Below are positions 4,368 through 38,106 of a stretch of DNA of 64,000 nt, piece by piece. Source of the stretch: Salpingoeca rosetta. Its lineage: Eukaryota > Protista > Choanoflagellata. Both the position numbers and the translations under genes were made by a program. The stretch is taken from contig JAWQFM010000004.1 in the NCBI GenBank assembly GCA_033442325.1, positions 1,695,261 through 1,759,260 on the forward strand. The letters are read 5' to 3'. Positions within the stretch are counted from its first letter, which is position 1. Each line of letters opens with the position of its first letter. The notes below the pieces were generated by a model. It had not been told where the DNA came from and did not search any database. It saw nothing but the letters and a program-made list of their open reading frames with translations.

Positions 4368-7300
4368 CACATACACACACGCCATAGGTACCATGAAGGA
4401 AGCCCACCCAAATGCCGTTGTGGTGTCGCGGTTCCTGGGCACGTCGCGGGAGAGCGGCACTGCCCGCACCCTGATGGCCAACGTGTACCGCCATATCCAC
4501 CGCGCAGTGAAAGGCAAGGAGCCAGCAGCATCGCCAGCAGCCGACTTTGAAAAGCTGACAGAACAGTTTCAGGCTGCCCTCAAGCTTGGCACTGCTCGCA
4601 AGCCGTTGGTGCTCGTGCTGGACTCGCTTGACCAGCTCTCAGACGAGGACCAGGGCCGCAACCTGGAATGGCTGCCGCTCGCATCGCTGCCGCCAAACTG
4701 CGCCATCGTCGTGTCCACTCTGCCGGATGTGGGCGGATGCTGGGAGGTGCTCAAGGCCACGCTGCCAGACACCAACCAGCAGCACGTGGCCAAGATCAGC
4801 AAAGACGACGCAGACGGCATCCTGAGCACGCCGATGCCAAGCGGTCCCTCACCCCTGCACAGCGCAGTGTTGTGCTGGGCGTCTACGAGTCCTGCCCGAC
4901 ACCGCTGTACCTCCGCATCTGCACGCAGTTCTTTGCGCTTCGCTGGAACCACACGGACGCAATTGCACCCGACTTCTTCCCCAAGACGGTGGAGGGCCTG
5001 ATGGAGAAGGTGTTTGATGAGCTGGAGACGCGACACGGCAAGGAGACGGTGCGGGCGGCGCTCGGGTACCTCTCTGCCTCGCGCGGCGGACTCAGCGACA
5101 ATGAGATGGAGGATCTGCTGTCCTGCAACGACACCGTCCTGGACGAGATCTACGAGTGGTGGGTGCCACCCGTCCGCCGCGTGCCCCCGCTGATCTGGGC
5201 ACGCATCGTGTCTGACCTGGAGGGCGCGTTGGTGGAGCGTGGCGCTGAGGGCGGCGTTACTGTCCGTGCATGGTACCATCGCCAGCACCGCGAGGCAGCA
5301 GAGCGACGCTACCTCGGCCTCAACTCGCGCAGCGGTGCTGGAAATGACACGGGTGATGATAGCGACGGTAACGGTGATGGTGCTGGTGATGGCAGCACTG
5401 CCACGTCCTCGTCCACGACCACTACCACCGCAGCCTCCACTTCCACCACCACCACGGCCTTGACGGTGCAGCGGCACGGCGAGCTTGCAGACTACTTCAG
5501 CGGCAAGTGGGAGCACGGCCGCCACCTGCACGACAAGACGGACGACGCGAGTGCTCTGCGCGACCGCAAAGTGGCGTCCATGAAGACGGTGCTGGCTGGT
5601 CGGCTCGATGACCCGCGCTCCGGTGTTGTGGTCAACGCACGCAAGGTTGCCGTGCTGCCGTTCCACCTCATGCATGCGCAGCGGTGGGAGGAGTGCGCGA
5701 CAACGCTGTGCGACCTCGAGTTCATCGAGGCCAAGGCAACAGCGGGGATGGTGCGGCAGCTGGTGGCAGACTTTGAAGACCTGCTGCGCAGTGGTGGTGG
5801 TTCTAGTGGTGGTCATGGTGGCGCACTGGAGAGCCTGCTCAAGAAACACAGCTTCGACATCTGGGCGCGATTTGTGGCTCGCAATGCCCTCATCTTCGAG
5901 CGTACGCCTGGCGCTGTGGTGGCGCGCGCCTCGCTGTATCCAGACGAGACAGCGGTGTTCAAGGCGGCAGAAACTCTGTTGTCCACGCCAGGCTGCCGCC
6001 TACCACGTGTTCGACAATACAACAAGCCACAAGAGCTTGACCCACTTGTGTGCGTGTGTTCCGCAAGGTGGTTTTCCGACGTTCGGGATGTCATCTTTAC
6101 TCGAGATAGTCGTTGGGTGTGCGGGTGTGGCTCTCCTAGTGGAGCTGGAGATGTTCACGTGTGGGAAGCACGGACTGGCACTCCTGTGGCGAGGTTGCGT
6201 AAGCCCAATGACAACGCAAAGGCAGCGCGCATTGTTCAGCTGCCATCGGGCCTCATTGCAGTTGCCTGCACAGATGGAAAGGTGTATGTGCGGAAGCTGG
6301 CAACGCACGAGGTCACGCGCTGTGTGGAGGTGTTTGACCCTGAGTCGGAGGAGCTTTGCGTGTTGCGGATGACCGACGACGATGCCCTGGTGTGGATGAT
6401 GACTGGTGACAAACCTCCAAAGCCAAAACATCCCCTACAACTGAGGAGAGATGGCGATGATGATGACGATGATGTGCCAGGCGTGACGCGCATCATGCTG
6501 TTCAGTGTTGACTTCAGTCATTGTGTGTGGAAGTGCACGATGCAAGACAAGCTGTGTTGTGGGCAGATCCGCAACAACACGCTGGTCGCAGGTACGAAGA
6601 GCGGCAGCGTCATCTGGTTTGAGCTCAAAGGACTTCCGACGCCATCTCAGCGTCCCGCCCAATCGTCCATGGCAGGAGACCAGGCAGCCTTGGTGCAGGT
6701 TGCCCGCTACAACATGGAACGCAGGAGCCCTGCTGTAACAACCCTATGCCTGCTGCATGGGGGCCTTGATGTTGTCGTGTACTGGGGCTCGCATCTGTAC
6801 AAGCTGAAAGCTGACGGAACAATGGTGGCGCGGGTTCTCTGCGCCATGGTTGGAAGCGCAAGGACCTTGGCTGCCAGCGGATCCCTTGTGGTGGTGGGTG
6901 GATTTGGGGATTCTACGAAGGTGTATGACGTAACCACGATGACGTCGCTGCGCTCCGTGGGACCAGCGCCCACCGGCATTGTTACTCTCTCTCCAGATGA
7001 CACGTTGCTGGCTGTTGGAGGAAGCGACACCCTGGTCTCTGTGTTTGATTGGGAGGAGATCAAACTCAGCAACAACGCAGGCGCGAAGCAGACAAGGTCG
7101 ACTGCATCACTGGCCACACCCACGATTGCGCTCATGGCAGCCCCACCACATCGTCAGCAGCAACAACGACAGCCGCAAAACGTCGTAGTTTTCATCGGAT
7201 CGGGTGGATCAGGTGCCAAGCATGCGCTTGCTTTGTACGAAGCAGCAAACATGACAGCGGTCAAGGCCATTGACATACACAACAGCGGTGACTTTTGGAG

Positions 7301-8234
7301 CTTCAACCAGATGAGCGGAAGTCCTGATGGACGCATCGTCCTTTGTTACTCCGGCACAGACAAAGCCATTACGGCTGTCAACACGGTCACTAGCGACGTG
7401 CACAAGAATGTCATTACGAGTCGGAAGACACACCGAGACTGGCAAGTGTTCTTCGCACCAACAAGCGACTCGTGCGTGCTGATTGATGGGTGTGATGTGT
7501 TCCTCCTGGCGCTGCCGGCGTGCAAGCAAGTGGTCGTGCGTGACCCTGAGTACGTGCACACCGAACTCGGGGTCACTGACGAAGTCACTTGTTGCGTTTG
7601 GCACCCTCAGTACCCGCATGTGCGTCAATTCGCCACCGGGTCGAAGAACCACACAGCACGGCTGTGGCAACTCAACACAGACGATGAAGGCAACATTGTC
7701 GAGGTGGCAGACGTGCGGGTGTTTGCAGGCCATAAAGGGCCTGTGTACAGTTTGGCGATGTGCACGGATGACCAAGGTGGTGTTTTACTGGCAACGTTTG
7801 CAGCAAAAAATGGCATTCAGCTGTGGAACCTGAATGACGGAGCGTCCCCCATTCGATCCTTGTCCGACCCTTTCTCCAGCGACTATTCGCTGTTGTGGCT
7901 TCCAAGGCAAAGGTTGCTGGCCACGTACACCCGTGGAGGGCGTAATCTGGAGTGCAGGAACCTGTCAGGAGAAGTGGTTCGCGCCATCAAGCTTGGACCA
8001 CACTGGATGATACTGCACCCCAGTGAGAAATACCTTGTTGTGCCGTCCTATGGTGGCTTTCAGCTGCTGGATGCAAACACGTTGGAGGTCGCCTTTCAGT
8101 CCTTTGGCCACGACGGCGAGGTGTCCTACGGGAACCTGCGAGCAGTGCGCATGGCACCCGATGGACTCCACTTTGTTTCCCAGTCAGCGGACAACATCAT
8201 CCTCGTGCACGACTTATCACTGCTGCCGCTTTGA
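3204..8234 (+). pseudogene. NWD1/NWD2-like DUF4062-NACHT-WD40 STAND protein; 5'-truncated and frameshifted (or assembly error)
   Basis: ICMREIKRCQ..ILGNKYGFRPFP (NWD N-terminal region), P-loop GPSGSGKTS, RFLGTS, Walker B LVLVLDSLDQL, PLYL, GGLSDNEMEDLLSCNDTVLDEIYEWWVPPVRRVPPL, WYHRQ, LCDLEFIEAK, then WD40 repeats. Intron 4186-4387 (GT..AG, in frame). Frame change near 4829. Confidence 0.8.
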
Positions 8235-22450: not shown

Positions 22451-22829
22451 ACAGAGGCACGAGGCAGCGTGGAGAAGGTGGTGGAGGGGGGAGGACGAGA
22501 GCGTCACGACGTCAGACACGACGCAAGACACGAGAGGAGGTCAGGTGCACCAACACAGGCTGAGCACGTGTCATTGGTTGGAAACACATCACACTATCTG
22601 TCACTGTCAATCATTGCCATCATCATCGAAGCTGATTGATTGTGATTAATTTTTGTTTTTTTCGTGTGTTTGGTGTGAGGACTGCGAGGGGGCGTGGCGA
22701 GCTTGGGCCCGTTCCAAGCAACGGTGGTTGGCGAAACGAAGAAGAGCTGGTGGAGGAGCGTTTCTGTGTCATTTCCACACCTCTCTACTCTTGCGTTTTG
22801 GTTTTCACCAAGCTACCAAGAGCCAAGCA

Positions 22830-24841
22830 ATGTTCCGCTGTTGCCACAAGCCCACAGCGACGGTGCCAGTCGCCGCCCATGACGCCGCCGCCTTTGACAT
22901 CTTCATCTCGCTTCGCTTCAGCGAGGCACGAAACGCGGGGAAGGCGCTCCAGCGAGCGCTCGAGGCAAGGGGGCTGAAGGTGTTTCTGTGTGAGGTTCCT
23001 CCAGGCTCGAACATTGCCAAGGTTGTGATTCGAGCGCTGCATGGGTGCCGCATGGCGGTGATCCTTGGCACGCGTACGTATGGCAAAGAGACGGACAGCA
23101 GCTTCAGCACATTTGACGAGCTTCAGTACATTGTTGATCGAAGGAAGCCGTTCTTCCTTGTGAAGATGTGCGACGACTTTGAAGAGCCTGAGGCGCAATT
23201 TCACCTGAGGAGCAACGTGGCATATTTCGCTTGGACGCCCAAAAACGAGGATACAAACATCAGCGTGCCTCCGCCGCTGGTTGATGACATTGTTGGCAAG
23301 TTGAAGGTGAGAGCCTGCATATGCGATGGTGCGAGTATGGACCAAGCATGCGCTCGTGTTTGCATTCGAAGCAACGTTTTCGTGTGTGTTTGGGCCGCTC
23401 ATGAGTTGTGCCTGTGTGCTGTTGTCCTGTTGTTGACTCACATACAACACACTGTCTTCCTTCGCTTGCTTCTGGGTAGGAGCAGACCCCCAACACCCTG
23501 ACCAACGCATCAGGCCAGCAACTGGCTGCCACAACTTCGTTCGACAGCCCACTTTCTGTCTCTGAACCGCCGTTCAGCCCAGGACGCGAGGATGCGAAGA
23601 TGTTTGCCATGGAAGTTGGTCATGAGCCATTGACTGTCAAGCGCGGTTGTAACTGGAAACGGGCGTTGCGCACGGCGTTGGCGGTTGCCATTGTGGTTGG
23701 CGTTGCCGTGGCTGTTCCAATCACGGTGCTGTCTGGAGGTAGCGGGAACGGTCCCGACGGGCCTGGAGGAGGTCCCGACGGGCCTGAAGGAGGCCCCGGA
23801 GGGAACATGAGCAACGCGTCCCTTCCAACAACCACCAGCTTGCCGACTACAATCAACGGTACCACAAAGGCGACTTTGGCTGCAGCCGGAACTGGAACGT
23901 TTGGTCAGCTTGGGCCAACAGCAGACAAGTGGCTTGGCGGCGTGCTGGCAAGCAACGGGCTGATCTATGCCGCGCCTTGGTACTCGCCTTCCGTGCTCAT
24001 CATCAACCCCAGCACCAACACCGTCGACACCACCACCATCTCGGGACTTGGAACGGATCCAGCCAAGTGGGCTGGTGGGGTGATGGCACACAACGGCCTC
24101 GTTTACATGTTCCCTTCAAACAGGCAGTCGATGCTCATCATCGACCCAGACACCAATGCGGTTGACATCACGAGCATCCACTCACTTGGCTCGACGAGCA
24201 ACAAGTGGTATAGTGGCGTTGTGGCCAGCAACCAACTCATCTTCGGCATCCCGTTGTATGCCACGTATGTGCTGATAATTGATCCGAAAACCAGCACCGC
24301 CGACATCACGACGATGGCAGGACTGTCGAGCGGGACGCACAAATGGTATGGTGGCGTGCAGGCAGACAATGACCTCATCTACTGCATCCCCGTGAAAGCT
24401 TCTTCTGTTCTTATCATCAACCCAGGGTCCTTGACGATGGACCTCACGACCATCAGTGACCTCAGTTCCACAGGCAGCAAGTGGTATGGTGGTGTGCTGG
24501 CAGAGAATGGCTTCATCTACACCATCCCAGCCTACTCAGCGACGATACTCGTCATCGACCCAGCCACAAACGCGACCAACGAGCTTGTTGTTGCACCCGC
24601 ACCAGGCTCCTTGAAGTGGAATGGCGGTGTGCTCGCACCCAACGGCAACATCATTGGCATCCCGCACGACTCTCAATCAGTCCTTGTCCTTGATCCAACA
24701 ACTAACACCACCGACACAACAACCATCAGCAATCTTCATGGCTCTGCCAAGTGGCTAGATGGTGTGCTTGCTCCAAACGGCCTCATCTACGGCATTCCAC
24801 ATGATGCTGAGTCCGTCCTCGTCATCGATCCCGGCTGCTGA
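22830..24841 (+). CDS. TIR domain - transmembrane helix - 7-repeat beta-propeller (predicted type II receptor, about 612 aa)
   Basis: Exon 1 is 22830-23306 (FDIFISLRFSE..ALEARGLKVFL..MAVILGTRTYG..STFDELQY..KPFFLVKM = TIR). Phase-0 intron 23307-23479 (GTGAG..TAG). Exon 2 (23480-24841) is open and in frame with TM ALAVAIVVGVAVAVPITVL and seven propeller repeats ending VLVIDPGC*. Confidence 0.8.
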
Positions 24842-27719: not shown

Positions 27720-29039
27720 TGTGTGTGTGGGCTTTGTGTTTGTGTGTGGTGCCCCTGCGCGTGTGCGCGTGCGCGCCTACTTAAGCTCCTTTCTCAATCT
27801 AGTGCCCCCCCCCCGGCCACACACACAGTCCGGCTACGAGGTGAGCGACTTTATCAATTTCGTTTGGCAATGGGACCCAATGACCAACATCCAACACAAC
27901 CATTACACCAACGCGCGCAACGGCTTTCTCGACCTCAACTACAGGTAGGCACCACCATTGTCTGAGTGCATGCGTGCATGCATGCATGGTGTTCCTCGCT
28001 CCACACCACTACACACATACAAACACATACACACATACCACTACACACACACGCACACATACCACGACATGCACCCACGCACACACATATGCACACACAT
28101 GCACACATACACATGCACACACATACACATACAAATACACACACACACACACATCCCCTCACCATCCCCCACCTCCCCAAACACACCATCAGGTGCATCC
28201 ACAGCGATGTGACGTCGCGGTTGTCTGAGATGTCCATGGTGGAGCGCGTACCGGACGAGCCGCAGACGCACGCGGCGCTGATCTTGGCGCACCTCGGGCT
28301 TGCCTTCTGGCACGAGTTCTGCTTCGTCAGCGGCGCAGACGTGAGTGCAGCCACGCATCCCATGCAGCTGCCACGTGACAGTGTCACCTCAAACTTCACG
28401 TGCGACCGCTGGCTCTCCTTGCCAGAGGCGCTTGGCATGCAGCCGTTTATGCCCAGCAGCGGCATTGTGTTCCGCAGCAACTTTGGCATCTTGCAGTCTG
28501 CGCCCTTCAACCTGACGGCTGCGGACGAGCTGCGGCGCATCTGGGATGAGCCCCTCAAGTCGCTGCCGTGGGAGCGCGTGACCAAGCTGGCAGAGGGTAC
28601 GGTGGAGACAAAGTGCCTGGAGCGGCGCCATGCGATTGCCGTCATCTCGGGCCTTGATCCTGACAAGGTGCCGGGTCACCTCCGCCTGCTGCGCAACCTG
28701 CGCCACCTCTCATCGCTCGTACTGGAAGAGACGGTTCTGGCGAACACCATCAAGGACGTGACGCGAACGCAGCTCTGGATTCTGCTGAAGACACGCCCCC
28801 TGAAGCAGACGCCAGTGCCACTGCGCTCGTTTGCAGCGTTGCTGGACGACGTTGTGGAGCAAGTGCGCGCGCATAACGCGCAGGGCAGCGGCCGCTTCCT
28901 GAAGGTGCAGTACCTCTCGGCAGAGGGCGACGCCTCGGAGCAGCACGTGTTGTGGACGGCGGGCTTGAAAGTGCGCGGCGTGCGCCACTACCGCGTCACT
29001 CTGCAGGAGCTTGAGGATGCACTCAGACCCGAGTGGTGA
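25540..29039 (+). CDS. GT2/GT-A-like glycosyltransferase with N-terminal signal or anchor (paralog A)
   Basis: Exons 25540-25980, 26322-26408, 26663-26826, [gap and low-quality sequence 26979-27640], 27829-27944, 28193-29039. Motifs VSAVISYRER and RNMALPYIASSKYTLWADHG. Paralogous to 36688-40689. Confidence 0.7.
25999..26242. repeat. Compound (GTAT)n-(GT)n-(GTAT)n intronic microsatellite
   Basis: Seen directly. Confidence 0.95.
26979..27173. other. Assembly gap
   Basis: N run; the flanking sequence is homopolymer-rich and looks low quality. Confidence 0.98.
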
Positions 29040-29384: not shown

Positions 29385-29497
29385 GCACACACGCCACTCT
29401 CACCCTCCCCCCCCCCACACACACCCATCCACCCCACCCCCACCCATCCCCACACATTACGCAATGCACACCACCCCCCCCCCCCACCCCCAAATCC

Positions 29498-32400
29498 TCA
29501 CAGCGACTTCAACGCAGCCTTGTTCTTCTGATTTGCTTTGATAGTTGAACCAGACACTTCCATGTCTGGCGCCGAAAGTTCCATTGCATCATCGTCAAGG
29601 TGCAGCGCCTGCAACTCGTCTTGCACAGTTGCCGCCATGGTGACGGGCTTCTTGTGCTTCTGGCTGGCGTTGCCACTGCCGTGCCCAAAGTGCAGGTTCA
29701 GAGCTTGCGCGGCCTTGAAGGGCATTGTTGACGCTCGTCGGAAGTTGTGCAAACACAAAAACACAGACGGGAGCACGTGGTGCAGCTTGCGATACAGTGT
29801 CTCCTTGCACAGCGCCTGCGTGGTCTCATCCAGCAAGCCAGCTTGACGCAGCACTTCCACAGAGCACCATGGTGGGGTGTCGTACACAAGGTCGTGCATG
29901 CATTGAAACAGCCCTGGCACGTCATCGCTGTAGTCACACGCATCGCCACAGGTGCTGCTGCTGCAGTCGCCGTCACTGTGCTCCATGGCATGCATCAGCG
30001 CTGGCATTCCTTGGCGTAGCACAGCCTTCCATTTGTCAGTGAACTTGTCATGTCCTCCACCGACACCAGTGTGCGCCAACCAATACCCACCCGTCCACTG
30101 GCTGAGGAACTTGCCGATGGCGTTCCTCTTGTCGGCGCTTAGCTGCTGCCACTCATCACTTGTGCACTGCTGTTTCTTCACTCGCACCTGGCTCAACTGC
30201 AGCGCAGGCAACAAGCAGCGCGCCACCACGTCGCTCGGGTCATGGTCCTGGAACAGGAAGACGCCGCCGCCTTCTGCTGTGCGGAGGTAATCATCCGCGC
30301 TCACGCGTTGTGCCGGTGACTCGCATGTAAGCCGCACAACGGCGTCCTTGGCCGCTTCCTGAAACGCCGCCTCTGCACCCTCGTTGACAACGCCAGCCAT
30401 GGTGCTGGTGGTGGTACTGGTGGTACTGTCACCGCTGCTGGTGGTGTCACCGCTGCTGGTGGTGGTGGTGGTGCTGACATTGCCACGCATGCGGATGAAT
30501 GCAATCACCTGGCCAAACGCAAACATGTCTGCTGGCTTTGACCTTTGGCGGTGATGTGGGGCAACAGCACGCTGCTCTGGTGCCAGCCACTCCTGACCAC
30601 AATCCATGCACCCAACACCCAGCCCGTATGCAGCCAGCTTTGCACGGTACACGCTGCTGCTGGGTACGCTCGCCCCAACCTCCTGCGGACAGCACAGCAC
30701 GTGATGTGGGCACAGGCTGCCGTGCGTGAGCTGACGCGAGTGCAGGAAGTGCAGTCCGTGAGTGATGTCACGGATGAGAGAGCGCAGCGCCGCGTGATCA
30801 AGGGAGGACAAGATATCCGGCGACAACGGGCGCGAGTGACATGGCACACGCGCTGGCAGGAAGGAAATGTTGAGGCTGCTGTCGTGCTGAACACCCTGGT
30901 AGCGAAGGAGGGCATCAGGCAGTACCGTGCCACTTGCAGGTAGCTGCAGTGCGCTGCTTGGTTGCATAATTGCCCACACAGCCACCTGAGTGCTGGAAGC
31001 TGTCGCATGAGAGGGCGCATGCGTGCCACCTGCCGTGCCTTCAGCATCAGACATGCTGCCTTCGTACACGTGCTTACCAAAGAGCCCACCCATAAACTGC
31101 AACGACGAAACCCGTATGCCATCGAGGACATGTGGCGCACCACGCGGCCACGTGGGTTGCGGTGTGGAGGTCGTTGGCAGTTGCTCCGTCACGAAGCGCG
31201 GGTCTGTTGCCATGGAGAACGCATAACGCCTGTTGCGGGTTTTGTCAACACGATGCACGAGCGCCTCATGGTACGCGGCCGACACAGGATCCGAGTCACT
31301 CGCACTGGGTGGCGGCGGCAAGACAATGTCAGAGTACACCGTCGTGGGTGCGGGAAACGTGCGCAGGCCGCGCTGGAACAAGGGCTGGGTGACTGCCAGA
31401 GGATCTGTTGCGGCAGCTGTGACCAAACAGCGCTTCTCGAATGAGGTTGTGCCTATCGACTCCTCCACAACATCAACCGCAACAAGCACAGCCAAGTGGA
31501 GAACCAGTGGGTTGTCGCCCACCACGATGATGTCCAGGCCCTGCCGATGCTCGTCGTCATCCGTGCACACCGCCAGGCAATTGGTGTCGTTGATTTGGGC
31601 CACAAACATGCCCAAGCTGAGGTGGATGGGCACGCCTCGAATGGCGTTCACAATCGGAAACAGCCGTCTCACAATCGCTGACCAGCACGTGGGCGGCAGC
31701 CACTCGTTCGCCTTTGTGCACTGCAGGCGCCGTCCAAAGATGACGCTCGCCTCACTGCCAAGCAGCTCGTTCATCCTGGCTCTGATGGTCGGGTGAGGAT
31801 CTTGGCGAGGAAGGAGGGCGGGAAACGTGAAGCGCCCGTCACCCAGTGCAAAGCACACGTCAAAGGAAGCGAGGAATGGCAGCAAATCGTCCTGCGCGTG
31901 CTGTGGGATGCGAATGCTTCGTTTTTCCAGCGCGTTTACGGCTTGCAGTACAGATACGCCAGGCACGAAGATCGCTGTGCTTGCTGTGCCCGCCTGCGCA
32001 GTCGTCAGCCTCAAGCCGTGCAGCGGGTGCAGCAGCGCCGCCATCAGCTTGCTTAGCCAGGTCACCGGCTCCAGCACACACCGGTCCTCGTCATCGGGAA
32101 TGCGCCGCACCACACCCGCATCATCCAAGAACCTCAAAATGAGGTCGGGGTCTTTGTCTCGAAAGTCAATCTCGGACACACTGATGATGGGCCACACCTG
32201 GTGCTGCTCCATTTTCATGCTCTGCACACAGTTCTTGATGCTCAAATAGGCGGTAGGGACTTGGACGTAGGGCACACCTTCCCTTCGCAGTGTTGCGAGT
32301 TCTTCATCCAGGGCAACAAGGCCGTTATCGGCGCCTGCATCACCAATGTCTTGTTCATCGTAGCGTGGGGCAAAACAGCAGTGACCAAGATGAAACTCGC

Positions 32401-35400
32401 TTCCAACCCGCTCTTGCACAACAGCGTGGAGGTGCTGGAGCTCAAAATCAAAGGATGGCAAGTCTGTCTTGGTGGCGACCAGCCGCACTTGCACGGCTTC
32501 GGCTTGCTTGTGTCGAGAGAGGCGGCATGCTTGCAGCAGGCCGAGCCATACGCTGATGCGGGCGATGGAATGCTCCAGCCCTTTTGAGGCATCAAACACA
32601 AGGAGGTACACGGCCATGTGCGAGGCCATGAAGAGCTGGTGGGCCGGGAAGAACTCCAGCTGGCCAGCGAAATCCCACAAGTCAAACGCGTGCTTGATCC
32701 AGTGGTCCACGTCAATGCCTTCCGTCCACACGTGCGGCATGTGCAAGAGCTGCTGGAAAGGGCTACCGCTGTCTTTGGACGAAGACAATTTGCTACCTTT
32801 GCTGAGGAGAAAGTGCTTTGCCTGAAGCATGCGCTGCACAACGTCCTCAGAGGCAGGCGTGTTTGCACTGCCAAACCACTGCTGCAGTTTCTCATCGGTG
32901 GATTTCAACCACAGCTTTCCCGTGATGCCCTTGGCCCTCGGGCACTCCTCGTCAAAGAACCCGTCCCTGTGCGCCAGATCGTGATCCACCCACTGGCGGA
33001 AGTCGGCCTCTGTGTATTTCTGAAACGAGGACTTGAGCGTCGAGCGCACTTCCTTCAGCACGTCAAACCGATCTATGTCGTGCAACATCAGCAGCGCCGT
33101 CTTGAGCGTGGTCTTGCCAACACCACCATCCCCAATGAACACGAGGCGGGAACGTGTGAGAAGCTCGTGGTTTTCCTGCACATCGCGCAGGTAGGCGTAG
33201 GTCGCTGGCAGGCCAGCCTTGACGATGGACGGAGGCGGGCAGATGATGGGGTTGCGCGAGACGTCGAGCGCCCGAACATGCGCTGTCTCCAGGAACTCCG
33301 GACAGAGGTGGGTGATGCCGTTGGAGGACATCCTTCACCAAGCAGGTGCAACACACAGTTGAAAGGCGGTGACCCGGGTAACGTAAGGGAGCATTTGAAG
33401 TGCAGGCGCGGCTCATCATGCGGCTCATCCACAAACAAGGCAAGGCGGTCGTGTTTTCGTTGTGGCACCACACCTTAGAGTGCCAAGATGGGCCAGCTGG
33501 CCAGCTGCCACGGCGATTGCACGAGCCCCATCTGTTTTGAGGCTCATATCTACGAGACTAGCAGGTGACAGCAAGGCCATGCGCGACGTGCGACGGGCCC
33601 AATGAGTGTACGCAGGGGTGCACAACGGAGCGAACAGGACTGATGTACACGTACATAGGCAGATGGGCACACAAAGGCAGATATGCACACAGAGACAGAC
33701 ATGCACACGATCCTATGATGCACGCACGCGTGCAACCACACACACATACACACACGTGCAACCACACAAACACACACACGTGCAACCACACACACACACA
33801 CGTGCAACCACACACACACACACACATGCAACCACACACACACACACTTCAAGCACTTACTCGAGGGTGTGAAGGCGTGACAAGTTACCAAGGGATTCGG
33901 CGAGTACATGGACACCTTGCGGCCCGATGTTTTCATTGTGCGCCAGACTACACACGAGGCAAGTTGACAGGTCGATACAACAGGCGGACCCACCGCACGT
34001 GAGTTCCTGCAACACGCGCACACGCACATGTGTAGACACACGTACAGATGCAGACAGGCAAGGGGGCAACGCGGCTTTGCATTGTGCATCGTTGCACAAG
34101 GATCGCACTGGAGTGATTCAAGCTGCGTCAACGTCGAAAGCGCTCGTGCCAGTGCACACACCCCTTCATATCCGATGTGGTTGCTTGCCAAGCTGCAACA
34201 TGGCAACAAGCGGGTAACGTGGCAAGTCTGAAACGTGAGCACCAAGATCAAGCAACCCGTCACAACGCCTGCCTGTCAACAGCACGAGAACACGCGAGCC
34301 TTCCCAAACCACAAACATGGTCGCACACGCACGCGCACATGTACAAACTTTAGTGACTTGATCCACGGCATCTGTTCCAGTACTTCTGCAAGCACGCGTG
34401 CACCTTCGGGGCCGAGGTTGTTGCTCGAAAGGCTTTAAGCGTGTAGAATAGGCAATCAATCACAAAGTGAGAGCTTGAGAGCGGCCAGAACCAGTCAGGC
34501 GATGACAAAGGTGCAAGTGCAATTTGCACACACGCACACAGCAACGCACTACACGAGAAACCATCTACCCGTTTGCTCACGACGTAAGGACGTACGTCAG
34601 AGCAGTAAGCTTTTCCATGCTGGTGAGGGTTCCTGCGAGGTCGCGAACGCCATCAGGTCCGAGCTGGTTGCTTCCCAGGCTGAAGGAGTGTGAGGGAAGA
34701 GCAAGAGGGCGGAATCGAGGAGGGGGGAGGGTGAGAGAGATATGCGTGAGTGAACGTGTAGTGTGCGCATGTGTGTGTGTGTGTGTGACATGGAAGACAA
34801 AGAGGCAGAGGCAGGGGTAGGGCAGAGACAGGGGCAGACGAACACGAGTGAGCATACACACACATACACACACACGCACCCACAGAGGCACAGGCACACG
34901 CACGCAAGTTCCTGAAGGTTCACAAGTTGCTTCAACGGCTCGGCAAGCGCGCGAGCGCCGTCCCTCTTGAGGCCGTTGCCCCAAAGCCTAAGAGAGACAC
35001 GTGTGCGTTACAAATCGCAGGGACAAACAAAATGAAAGATCCACGCCAATTGGCACGCAAAGAATGGGTTGCGGTATTGCGTACATCAACACACACACAC
35101 ACACACACACAAACATACACACATGTACGACGAGCACGCACTCGAGCGATGTCAGGTTCGTCAGGGTGCTCAGAGGGTCAGCCAGTGCACGAGCTCCTTC
35201 GAGCCCACAGGCGATGCTTCTCAAACTGTGGGATACAGTGAAGTACGAGGTGAGAACAGCAACGCCAGATGCAACCCATGAACTGAGCAGTGCGGAGGGG
35301 CGTGCAAAAGCACGTGAACATACACATGTGATTAAAGATACACACACGCACACATGCTCACGCACACACACACATACACGCGCGCGCGCGTGCACACGCG

Positions 35401-36091
35401 CATACGCACACGCACACACACACACACACGCACGCACACACACACATGCTTTCGCGCTTTGCGTCGGGCATCGCCCATGCACGGCGTGCATACGTACTTG
35501 AGCTTCTTCAAGTTCTGTAACAGCTGAAGCGCTGGTGCAAGGGCACGTACTCCTTCCACTTCCAGCTCTGTGCCGCGCAGGCTGGGGCAGGAATGCACGA
35601 AATGGGAGAGGCGGAGTGTCAATGGGAGCACGTGTATGGCGTGGCTAAGGTGTGGCTAAGGTGTGGCTCGAACAGGAAAAGGTCAGGCATTGGAGCACAG
35701 GTCTCATGAAACGTACTCGAGTGTTTCGAGGGACCTCAACTGATGGAGTGCGACTCCAAGCGCACGCGCTCCTTCGGGACCCATGGCGGTCCTGGGAAGA
35801 CTGCAAGGGCACCACACAAGCAAGTAAACCATCGAGCGTCTTGTCAGCTGTGCACGTGCACAACACGTGTCTCCGGCTTTCAACCACACCAACTGGAACC
35901 CATATCTACACACCTCAGTTCTGTAATCGTGCAATTGCTTTGTGCGACTTCTGCAGCCAGTCGTGCTATCATGGCAGCACTGAGTCGTTGGTTGGGGCGA
36001 CCTTCAACCCTGACAACATGTGAGAAGAGTGAGTGTGGTGTGTGAGTGAGAAGAGTGAGGAGATGTGTGAGTGGGTGTGGTGTGTGTGCGC

Positions 36092-36687: not shown

Positions 36688-37682
36688 CTACCACTCCGGC
36701 CGCAGCAAGTCTGTGAGCTCCTCGAGCGTGATGCGGTAGTAGCGAAGGCTGCGTACGCGCACGTGCGTTCTGCTGAGGACATACTGCTCGTCCGCATCGC
36801 CGTCTGCCGCCAGGTAGCGCAGCCCGAGCGTGCTGCCTGCGCCGCCCGGGTCCGCCTTGCGCACGCGCTCCACGACGTCGTCCAGCACCTCGGCGAACAG
36901 GCGAAGCGGTACCGGTGTCTTCTTCAGGGGGCGTGTCTTCAGCAGCAGCCAAAGCTGCAGCCGCGGCTCGCCCTGCTTCAGCGCCAGCTTGGCGAGGGCC
37001 TTGCCCTGCTTGTTGTGGCCGCCGCTGCTGCCTGCGGTCTGCTCTTCTTCGAGGACGAGCGAGGACACGTGCTGCAAGCACCGCAGGAGACGCCTGTGGG
37101 CCGGCAACTTCTCGCTCAGTCCGGAGATGACGGCAATGGCGTGTCGCCGCTCCAGGCACTTTGTCTCGACCGTGCCCTCTGCCATTGGCGTCACGCGCGA
37201 CCACGGGAAGGTCTTGACCGCAGCGCCCCACTGCTGCCGCAGCTCGTCCGCCGCCGTCAGGTTGAAGGGCACGGAGCGCAGCACGCTGAAATCGCTGCGG
37301 AAGACGATGCCTGCGCTTGGCACAAAGGGAAGCATGCCCACCGCCTCCGCCATGGTGTACCAGCGGTCGCACGTGAACCCGTGTGCGCCGGCCGGCAGCA
37401 GCATGGGGTGTGTGGCGCGCCCAGCATCAGCGCCGTCAACAAAGCAGAACTGGTGCCAGTACCCAAGGGAGAGCTGTGCGATGATCAGGGCAGTGTGCGT
37501 CTCGCGGGCGCTTGGCACGCGCTCCAGCATGGCCATCTTTTGCAGGCGGTGCTGCTCGTCGCTGTGAATGCACCTGTAGGGGGCCGGGAAGCGGTGGCGA
37601 AAGTTGGGATGAGCGAGGAGACGCGAGGGGACGCGAGGGGATTCACGCACAACTGCACTCACTCCCCACCTTCCAAAAGTGC

Positions 37683-37780
<98 letters not shown>

Positions 37781-38106
37781 CACCTGAAATCGAGGTCGAG
37801 AAACCCGTTGAATGCGTTTGTGTAGTGCGTACTCTGGATGTTGGACATGGGCTCCCATTTCCACGTGAATGTGAGGAAGTCGCTCGCCTCTGCGCTCGAC
37901 TAGAGGTGGTGTAGGGGGGGGGGTTGAGGAGAGACGATGAGCACGTACATGCAGGGAGCGGTGTGAGCTGAAGGATGAGGGTGTGGGGATAGAAACCCCA
38001 CAGCGCGCGGGCTATGCCAAGCACAGTGTGTTGTGAAGAAAAAGCACTTGACAACGGAAGTTCGCACACACACACACTTGGATGTGCACGCGACACGACA
38101 ATTCAG

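Follow-up and report, generated by a model that had tools for sequence, protein, structure and literature searches.

A choanoflagellate ROCO gene with a putative IRE1/RNase L-type pseudokinase-KEN module

We analysed a stretch of 64,000 nucleotides from the choanoflagellate Salpingoeca rosetta (GenBank assembly GCA_033442325.1, contig JAWQFM010000004.1, positions 1,695,261 to 1,759,260 of the forward strand), termed the window, which harbours a gene for a ROCO protein, that is a protein in which leucine-rich repeats (LRRs) are followed by a Roc GTPase and a COR region. Positions given below are those of the window, and all features of the gene lie on its minus strand. We consider it likely that the output part of this LRR-Roc-COR protein is a homologue of the kinase-extension-nuclease module of IRE1 and RNase L, in which a kinase is joined to an RNase of KEN/HEPN type, and that the protein works in the manner of RNase L, the copy encoded in the window being non-catalytic. 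A first-pass annotation, made from the DNA sequence alone, had proposed that the protein ends in an IRE1/RNase L-like pseudokinase and a KEN-like domain. This proposal is supported, mostly through two relatives of the window protein, P0001 and P0020.

The C-terminal module of the window protein contains a pseudokinase

The gene ends in a single uninterrupted open reading frame (ORF) of 1277 codons (29498..33331), which corresponds to a large terminal exon and comprises, in this order, the last LRR, Roc, COR, the pseudokinase, the KEN-like domain and a tail. The C-terminal module accounts for 538 of the codons, and RNA reads show zero splice joints within the ORF. All motifs that the first-pass annotation had listed behind the COR region are found in this one ORF, where the span assigned to them (29700-31100) corresponds to residues ~745-1211.

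The pseudokinase domain comprises residues 745-1022 (30266..31099) and lies directly N-terminal to the KEN-like domain. Pfam matches residues 843-1017 to the Pkinase family with an E-value of 5.8e-5, at a score that falls short of the family's cut-off. BLASTP aligns the module with a Nematostella vectensis protein (P0059, XP_001626634.3; E-value 4e-12) over the kinase C-lobe up to the junction between kinase and KEN domain (GGGVFLFQD in the window, GHPVFWSED in Nematostella). The latter is an ankyrin-kinase-KEN protein, which the NCBI names '2-5A-dependent ribonuclease'. The junction itself, GGGVFLFQDH (30242..30271), is aligned to the HPFFW found in proteins of the IRE1/RNase L type. Recognisable kinase strings include GGLFGKHV (residues 748-755), VAVW (residues 783-786, 30974-30985) and WLAPE (residues 915-919).

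To locate individual positions we used a residue map, in which the window protein, P0001 and P0020 are aligned to 40 natural IRE1-type modules. In this map the Lys of VAIK is replaced by W786. The catalytic loop, canonically HRDxKPxN, has become THGSLCPHH (residues 869-877, 30701..30727), so that HRDxKxxN reads H870-G-S-L-C-P-H-H, with Asp, Lys and Asn all replaced. At the DFG position we find LAAYGLG (residues 899-905, 30617..30637), in which Ala901 stands in for the metal-binding Asp (A901-Y-G). The structural kinase residues A917-P-E919, D935 and R1009, in contrast, are retained. They fall in invariant columns, and so do W1101, Y1134, L1141 and P1188 of the KEN-like domain. This coincidence with invariant columns, together with the Pkinase match and the BLASTP alignment to the Nematostella protein, indicates that the listed motifs are more than chance resemblances. 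The alterations of VAxK, HRD and DFG that had been noted from the letters are thus confirmed at W786, H870-G-S and A901-Y-G, and the altered RNxxxH motif of the KEN domain at H1146-D-L-V-Y-D1151.

The KEN-like domain is recognised through P0001 and P0020

The kinase is followed by an all-helical, degenerate KEN-like domain (residues 1023-1205, 29717..30265), whose assignment draws on a BLASTP match to the P0001 tail, on profile alignment of the family and on a structure model. Its active-site stretch, DYSDDVPGLFQCMHDLVYD (residues 1133-1151, 29879..29935), was placed by a column map against 40 IRE1-type sequences, P0001 and P0020. Tyr1134 is retained, whereas the catalytic Arg, Asn, His and His are replaced by His1146, Asp1147, Tyr1150 and Asp1151, respectively, which converts RNxxHH into HDLVYD. 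Further downstream the FPxL motif reads L-P-S-V (VLPSVFLCLH, residues 1186-1195). The KEN-like positions retained in the window copy are W1101, Y1134, L1141 and P1188.

P0001 (XP_004997100, 1354 amino acids) is a second S. rosetta protein and the sole close protein relative of the window ORF. BLASTP aligns the two colinearly across 1196 residues, and their tails are aligned from end to end with an E-value of 3e-21. P0001 has the same dead kinase motifs (VAVW, HGS and AAY) as the window copy. Its tail, PYDDTFPALMRCFRNVCHH...ELFPSLFLDLH, retains the KEN Tyr, Arg, Asn and His-His in an active-site part that reads Y..RCFRNVCHH..FPSL; the same residues are retained in P0020. A paralogue with an intact RN..H motif, which the first-pass annotation had suggested to look for, thus exists, its motif being RNxxHH. 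The top Pfam family for the P0001 tail is Ribonuc_2-5A (PF06479; E-value 7.6e-4, 20.1 bits). We regard P0001 as the likely RNase-competent form and as a candidate active enzyme. The module is missed by the public annotation of P0001, which names the protein a 'serine/threonine protein kinase' and lists no Pfam domains other than Roc and Ras. In the S. rosetta assembly a run of N of 7.7 kb (L001, 2206-9888) lies directly upstream of P0001, and the annotated protein therefore probably lacks its N-terminal, possibly LRR-encoding, exons. The window itself contains 844 N from ~26979.

A profile of the window and P0001 modules was searched exhaustively against 1.84 billion representative proteins and yielded 56 matches at an E-value of at most 0.001. 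One of them is P0020, a protein of 780 amino acids from Salpingoeca urceolata, which was found at an E-value of 1.7e-5, with the best-matching stretch in the KEN-like region. P0020 clears the PF06479 cut-off (34 bits versus 23.3), has HGR and TDW where HRD and DFG are expected, and its tail reads QLLRCFRNLRHH...LFP. PF06479 likewise exceeds its cut-off in three other matches, P0042, P0017 and P0007, the last being a fragment of the Nematostella protein whose full form is P0059. Word-indexed protein searches retrieved nothing besides P0001 and P0020, and a search of the ESM Atlas with the P0001 module returned generic kinases only. The HEAT-repeat proteins P0019 and P0022, which match the KEN-like region, were dismissed as repeat artefacts.

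For a reference set of KEN domains we used a degenerate DNA pattern for DLLRxxRNKxHH, which retrieved 111 metagenomic loci, mostly clear IRE1-type genes, and built a hidden Markov model (HMM) from 54 non-redundant natural KEN segments. On this KEN HMM P0020 scores 26.9 bits and P0001 9.0 bits, compared with 4.9 bits for the best of 900 shuffled tails and -1.0 bits for the window tail. When the three family tails are aligned to the 54 KEN domains by hhalign, the probability is 84.7% (P 6.7e-6, 73 columns); P0001 alone gives P 4.2e-4. Moreover, four landmarks are correctly spaced and occupy invariant columns of the KEN alignment: the RNxxHH motif itself, the Tyr ahead of it, a Trp ~33 residues before it and FPxL ~40 residues after it. 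Judged from sequence, KEN homology can be taken as secure for P0020 and as probable for P0001, and KEN membership of the window copy is supported by transitivity, through its unambiguous homology to P0001.

Two side observations were made in these searches. The metagenomic protein P0035 (656 amino acids) has two tandem IRE1-like kinase domains, each with ~125 bits on an HMM of the IRE1 module, and no KEN domain. Furthermore, a number of metagenomic kinase-KEN genes (L004, L022, L024, L049, L053, L068 and others; motif ...SSVRDLLRLIRNKHHHFDELP) run for 300-400 residues past the KEN domain, unlike classical IRE1.

The kinase groups with KEN-bearing kinases

When a profile of all three family members is searched against the PDB, the first 13 matches are all human IRE1 (39 bits, E-value 4e-9); next come MNK2 (33.7 bits), STK17A, yeast IRE1 and DAPK1. 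LRRK2 lies outside the best 60 matches. RNase L chains are not among the best PDB matches of either this profile or the structure model described below. The window sequence alone, or a profile of window and P0001, returns DAPK and MNK kinases at E-values of 0.001-0.03 in an uninformative ranking; for the window alone DAPK1/3 are best at 0.03 and LRRK2 is found at 0.5.

We then inferred a maximum-likelihood tree from 53 kinase domains. Besides the family it comprises 17 KEN-bearing kinases and 33 further matches of the family profile. Window, P0001 and P0020 form a clade (ultrafast bootstrap 97, Shimodaira-Hasegawa-like approximate likelihood ratio test 90; further values in this order). The family falls outside a clade of 31 generic kinases (90/92) and outside the IRE1 clade (96/96), and is placed beside the KEN-bearing P0017, P0007 and P0042. 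These comparisons support an affinity of the window kinase to KEN-bearing kinases, not to TKL/LRRK kinases. A clustering with the latter, which would have spoken against the annotated module, is not what we find: IRE1 ranks first in the PDB, and a tree that contains no LRRK, DAPK or other TKL rows places the family beside KEN-bearing kinases.

Structure prediction with AlphaFold gave two models. The first, based on two sequences, was unusable, with a predicted local distance difference test (pLDDT) score of 34. The second used 46 sequences, consisting of the family, the three KEN-bearing matches and 40 natural IRE1-type modules, and reached a pLDDT of 69 and a predicted template modelling score of 0.71. 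Its C-lobe (pLDDT 85-95) and core KEN helices (84-93) are modelled well and its N-lobe poorly. The best structural match of this model is IRE1, with an alignment that extends to IRE1 residues up to 958. Since the alignment is dominated by IRE1-type sequences, the model speaks for compatibility with the KEN fold and is not independent proof of it.

A near-identical Roc-COR-A tract is shared with the P0001 locus

The similarity between P0001 and the window ORF is unevenly distributed, with ~97% identity over residues 29-505 and ~35% beyond. At the DNA level this corresponds to a tract of 1417 bp (31850..33265 in the window, 10109-11523 in L001) that is 96% identical in blastn, spans Roc and COR-A and has sharp edges. 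Its flanks show ~35% protein identity or are unalignable between the two ROCO genes. The tract looks like the product of a recent gene conversion. Because the near-identical DNA is sharply bounded and lies amid ~35% identity, we regard P0001 and the window protein as old paralogues whose Roc/COR-A part has been homogenised recently.

Transcripts, sequence variants and possible decay of the window copy

Transcription was assessed in a quarter of each of three RNA-seq runs, whose species label is that of the datasets in which this stretch is best represented. Reads cover the unique C-terminal half of the gene with a depth of up to ~18, and nearly all first mates map to the plus strand, as a standard stranded library should yield for a gene on the minus strand. 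Most of these reads share only 95-99% identity with the window. A gap of 133 bp (31199-31331) has no coverage, and reads diverge into other sequence at 31181, 31438 and 29504. At the last of these positions the transcript stays in frame for at least 10 codons beyond the stop codon of the window; a splice donor at the stop codon was rejected as the cause, as there is no canonical donor and the continuation is absent from the window. The higher depth over 31864-33193 was likewise rejected as expression of the window copy. Variants in the reads over Roc-COR-A are exactly the residues of P0001, and the signal there is therefore due to cross-mapping.

Patches with 2-3% divergence from the window, fixed differences included, occur over 29470-31800 in RNA and DNA runs bearing this species label. 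Some pieces of the DNA contigs from another study match the window, and others show ~2.5% divergence. This patchy divergence may stem from allelic variation, from a difference between strains or from a third copy of near-identical sequence. The best-supported differences in the C-terminal half comprise 14 non-synonymous and 9 synonymous ones, among them His1146Tyr at the position of the former catalytic Arg. The reads thus come from a near-identical allele or copy, under what looks like relaxed constraint.

These data bear on the possibility that the C-terminal module of the window copy is a decaying remnant after duplication, which either drifts towards a pseudogene or is carried along while only the LRR-Roc-COR function is kept. 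All eight catalytic residues of kinase and KEN domain are replaced in the window copy, the RNA depth is low, and the count of 14 non-synonymous to 9 synonymous differences, with His1146Tyr among them, fits decay as well. So does a Ser/Thr-rich low-complexity insert in the kinase C-lobe (30401..30475), which is missing from P0001 and varies in length among sequencing runs (loose ends at 30424-30457). However, the 1277 codons are unbroken, including the 538 of the module, the structural core positions (W1101, Y1134, L1141, P1188, APE, D935 and R1009) are conserved, and transcripts of the correct strand exist. Moreover, the pseudokinase state is common to P0001 and P0020 and is therefore ancestral and maintained. 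Taking both sides together, we think it unlikely that the module is a mere remnant. In the terms of the first-pass annotation, which had called the effector possibly dead or a decoy, the loss of catalytic residues bears out this suspicion for the window copy, which is probably a non-catalytic partner, a regulator or a decaying duplicate.

Is the helical tail a KEN domain?

A number of results weigh against the assignment of a kinase-KEN module. The window tail has no KEN match in Pfam at an E-value of up to 10 and no match at all in the ESM Atlas; its KEN HMM score is negative, and hhalign of this tail alone gives P 0.12. A phmmer search of the window protein against the PDB detects no KEN domain directly. 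Small tail profiles retrieve no IRE1 or RNase L KEN chain from the PDB: the three-sequence profile returns thymidylate kinase (E-value 0.3), the two-sequence profile of P0001 and P0020 an interferon (0.4) and the P0001 tail alone nothing. The PF06479 score of P0001 is below the gathering cut-off (20.1 versus 23.3 bits). As for the kinase, IRE1 is not the top match when P0020 is left out of the profile, and the tree has long branches, supports the exact sister group of the family weakly (33/36) and contains no LRRK, DAPK or other TKL rows. In addition, 40 of the 46 sequences behind the structure model are of IRE1 type, so that its fold is partly imposed. Finally, a regulator role of the window protein is purely a matter of inference.

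The failure of the window tail and of the tail profiles to find KEN domains, the sub-threshold score of P0001 and the partial circularity of the model would all be explained if the tail were a lineage-specific helical extension behind a generic divergent pseudokinase and the RNxxHH of P0001 a coincidence. We judge this very unlikely. P0020 clears the curated cut-off and its kinase joins those of the window and P0001 in one clade (97/90), the P0001 motif, Tyr, Trp and FPxL fall at the right spacing in invariant KEN columns, the three tails together align to KEN domains at P 6.7e-6, and four PF06479-positive proteins are among the 56 profile matches. The KEN-like nature of the C-terminal helices thus stands by transitivity (through P0001, P0020 and the hhalign probability of 85%), while the window tail by itself finds nothing.

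That the kinase is an ordinary ROCO kinase, of LRRK/TKL or DAPK type and stripped of its catalytic residues, is suggested by the ROCO membership of DAPK1 and LRRK2 and by the PDB matches of the window sequence alone, but seems hardly credible, as these matches are not significant, the family profile ranks IRE1 first with DAPK ~14 bits lower and LRRK2 outside the best 60, the BLASTP match to the RNase L-like Nematostella protein runs through the kinase/KEN junction, and the kinase of DAPK1 lies N-terminal and not C-terminal to Roc.

A proposed mode of action and its relation to known systems

ROCO proteins (such as LRRK2 in Parkinson's disease and DAPK1) and kinase-KEN RNases (IRE1 and RNase L) are dimerisation-driven switches that have been studied separately. 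If the ROCO/kinase-KEN reading is correct, the LRRs and the GTP-controlled Roc-COR dimeriser would form the sensor part and take the place of the 2-5A-binding ankyrin repeats of RNase L or of the lumenal sensor of IRE1. From what is established for RNase L, IRE1 and Roco proteins, this sensor part would drive back-to-back dimerisation of a catalytically silent pseudokinase scaffold, which in turn would assemble the KEN RNase. P0001 would be the form that cleaves RNA. For the window protein neither phosphorylation nor RNA cleavage is predicted, and it would most plausibly serve as a non-catalytic partner or regulator of active paralogues, be it in a heterodimer, as a decoy or as an RNA binder. 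A bolder version credits S. rosetta with a GTP-gated counterpart of RNase L, with ligand sensing by the LRRs, dimerisation through Roc-COR and a pair of active P0001 and dead window protein, in which the latter is an obligate regulator or decoy and gene conversion keeps the Roc-COR-A parts alike. We put this forward only tentatively and regard it as rather doubtful.

RNase L and its invertebrate ankyrin-kinase-KEN relatives, such as the Nematostella protein, share with the window family the order of a cytosolic sensor, a pseudokinase and a KEN domain. The silent kinase of RNase L is presumed to serve dimerisation, as in the window family, and in the kinase tree the family adjoins such Nematostella-type proteins. 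The sensors differ, being ankyrin repeats in RNase L and LRRs with a Roc-COR GTPase in the window family. Pfam finds no ankyrin match in the window ORF; with an LRR and Roc-COR sensor and no ankyrin repeats, there is therefore nothing that predicts 2-5A binding. The active-site motif is RNxxxH in RNase L and RNxxHH, with an IRE1-like double His, in P0001, whereas in the window copy the catalytic Arg, Asn and His have been lost. IRE1, the kinase-KEN endoribonuclease of the unfolded protein response, is the best match in both the sequence-profile and the structural comparison, and it shares the kinase-KEN junction as well as the succession of W, Y, LLRxxRNxxHH and FPxL. However, IRE1 has a lumenal sensor and a transmembrane segment, neither of which is present in the window protein, whose N-terminus is that of a ROCO protein, and the IRE1 kinase trans-autophosphorylates, whereas the kinase of the window family is dead as judged from its residues.

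The putative LRR-Roc-COR order of the window protein is that of other ROCO proteins, including LRRK1/2, the Dictyostelium Rocos, bacterial Roco, MASL1 and DAPK1. The known outputs of ROCO proteins are TKL kinases (LRRK, Dictyostelium), an N-terminal CAMK-type kinase (DAPK1) or none. Loss of the Rx4-6H motif with retention of the fold, as would be the case in the window copy, also occurs in inactive HEPN domains such as the Swt1 HEPN and MtlR, which belong to different HEPN families.

RNase L and other HEPN RNases require the Arg and His of Rx4-6H, and HEPN domains without this motif have been proposed to be non-catalytic RNA binders (PMC3710099). The only fusion partners of KEN given in the same survey are kinases, ankyrin, CCCH, UBI (ubiquitin-like) and BRCT (PMC3710099), and proteins combining kinase and RNase are widespread, with ten clades described (PMC10400998). 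In the literature searched we did not find a ROCO-KEN protein or a ROCO output of KEN/HEPN RNase type. The combination of ROCO and kinase-KEN is thus an architectural variant built from known parts, which we have not found described. A natural fusion of this kind would show that control of a KEN RNase can be given to a Roc-COR GTPase and an LRR sensor, and the IRE1/RNase L family would gain a third type of sensor. The presence of an effector logic like that of RNase L among choanoflagellates would bear on how animal innate immunity was assembled; a GTP-gated analogue, if true, would be an RNA-cleaving effector of innate-immune type in the closest relatives of animals. The pair of active and dead paralogues, P0001 and the window protein, would offer a ready experimental contrast.

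Sensor part, tail and neighbouring genes

The Roc GTPase (32372..33160) is recognised by Pfam (PF08477, 37.7 bits, cut-off 27), and its best PDB matches are LRRK2 and the Roco protein of Chlorobium (C. tepidum). Its motifs are a P-loop, GDGGVGKT (residues 67-74), DFAGQ (residues 220-224) and TKTD (residues 287-290). P-loop and DxxGQ are separated by ~145 residues (residues 75-219, 32675-33109), which is ~100 more than in a Ras-like GTPase and is kept in P0001. The adjoining COR-A-like region (residues 360-507, 31811..32254) aligns to positions 2-143 of the 143 positions of the COR-A profile PF16095, with just 15 bits (E-value 0.023) against a cut-off of 35.3. A COR-B-like linker region (residues 508-744, 31100..31810) is assigned by its position in the ROCO domain order; the Pfam search of the ORF gives no family match there.

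Upstream of the ORF a regular expression and translation reveal nine exon-like open stretches (33464..35811) with one RNI-type LRR apiece, for example LSSNNLGPEGARVLAEVLEQMPWIKSLK, NNLGPEGARVLAEVLEQMPWIKSLK and NGLKRDGARALAEPLKQLVNLQELA, whose splicing to the ORF is putative. They are regularly spaced, with CA/GT-microsatellite introns between them, and have the look of one-repeat exons. Pfam detects LRR_6 on a single stretch, weakly (E-value 0.026), which is explained by single repeats being too short for Pfam.

The C-terminal tail (residues 1206-1277, 29501..29716) has no domain recognisable by Pfam, and pLDDT is below 50 at the end of the model. It is short and of low complexity, whereas P0001 (residues 1126-1354) and P0020 (residues 670-780) have a beta-rich extension behind the KEN domain that lacks a Pfam match.

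The ROCO gene is flanked by two paralogous ORFs in inverted orientation (27966-29039 on the plus strand and 36688-37848 on the minus strand), which are 58% identical over 298 amino acids and have no Pfam family match. Both end in ...LRPEW, and each has an apparent short upstream exon (M.NIQ..HYTNA.NGFLDL). Two further neighbours on the plus strand show architectures of immune type: an NWD1-like protein with a winged helix and a WD40 propeller (4668-8231), and an ORF with a near-threshold TIR domain (22653-23498; TIR_2, 27.4 bits versus a cut-off of 28).

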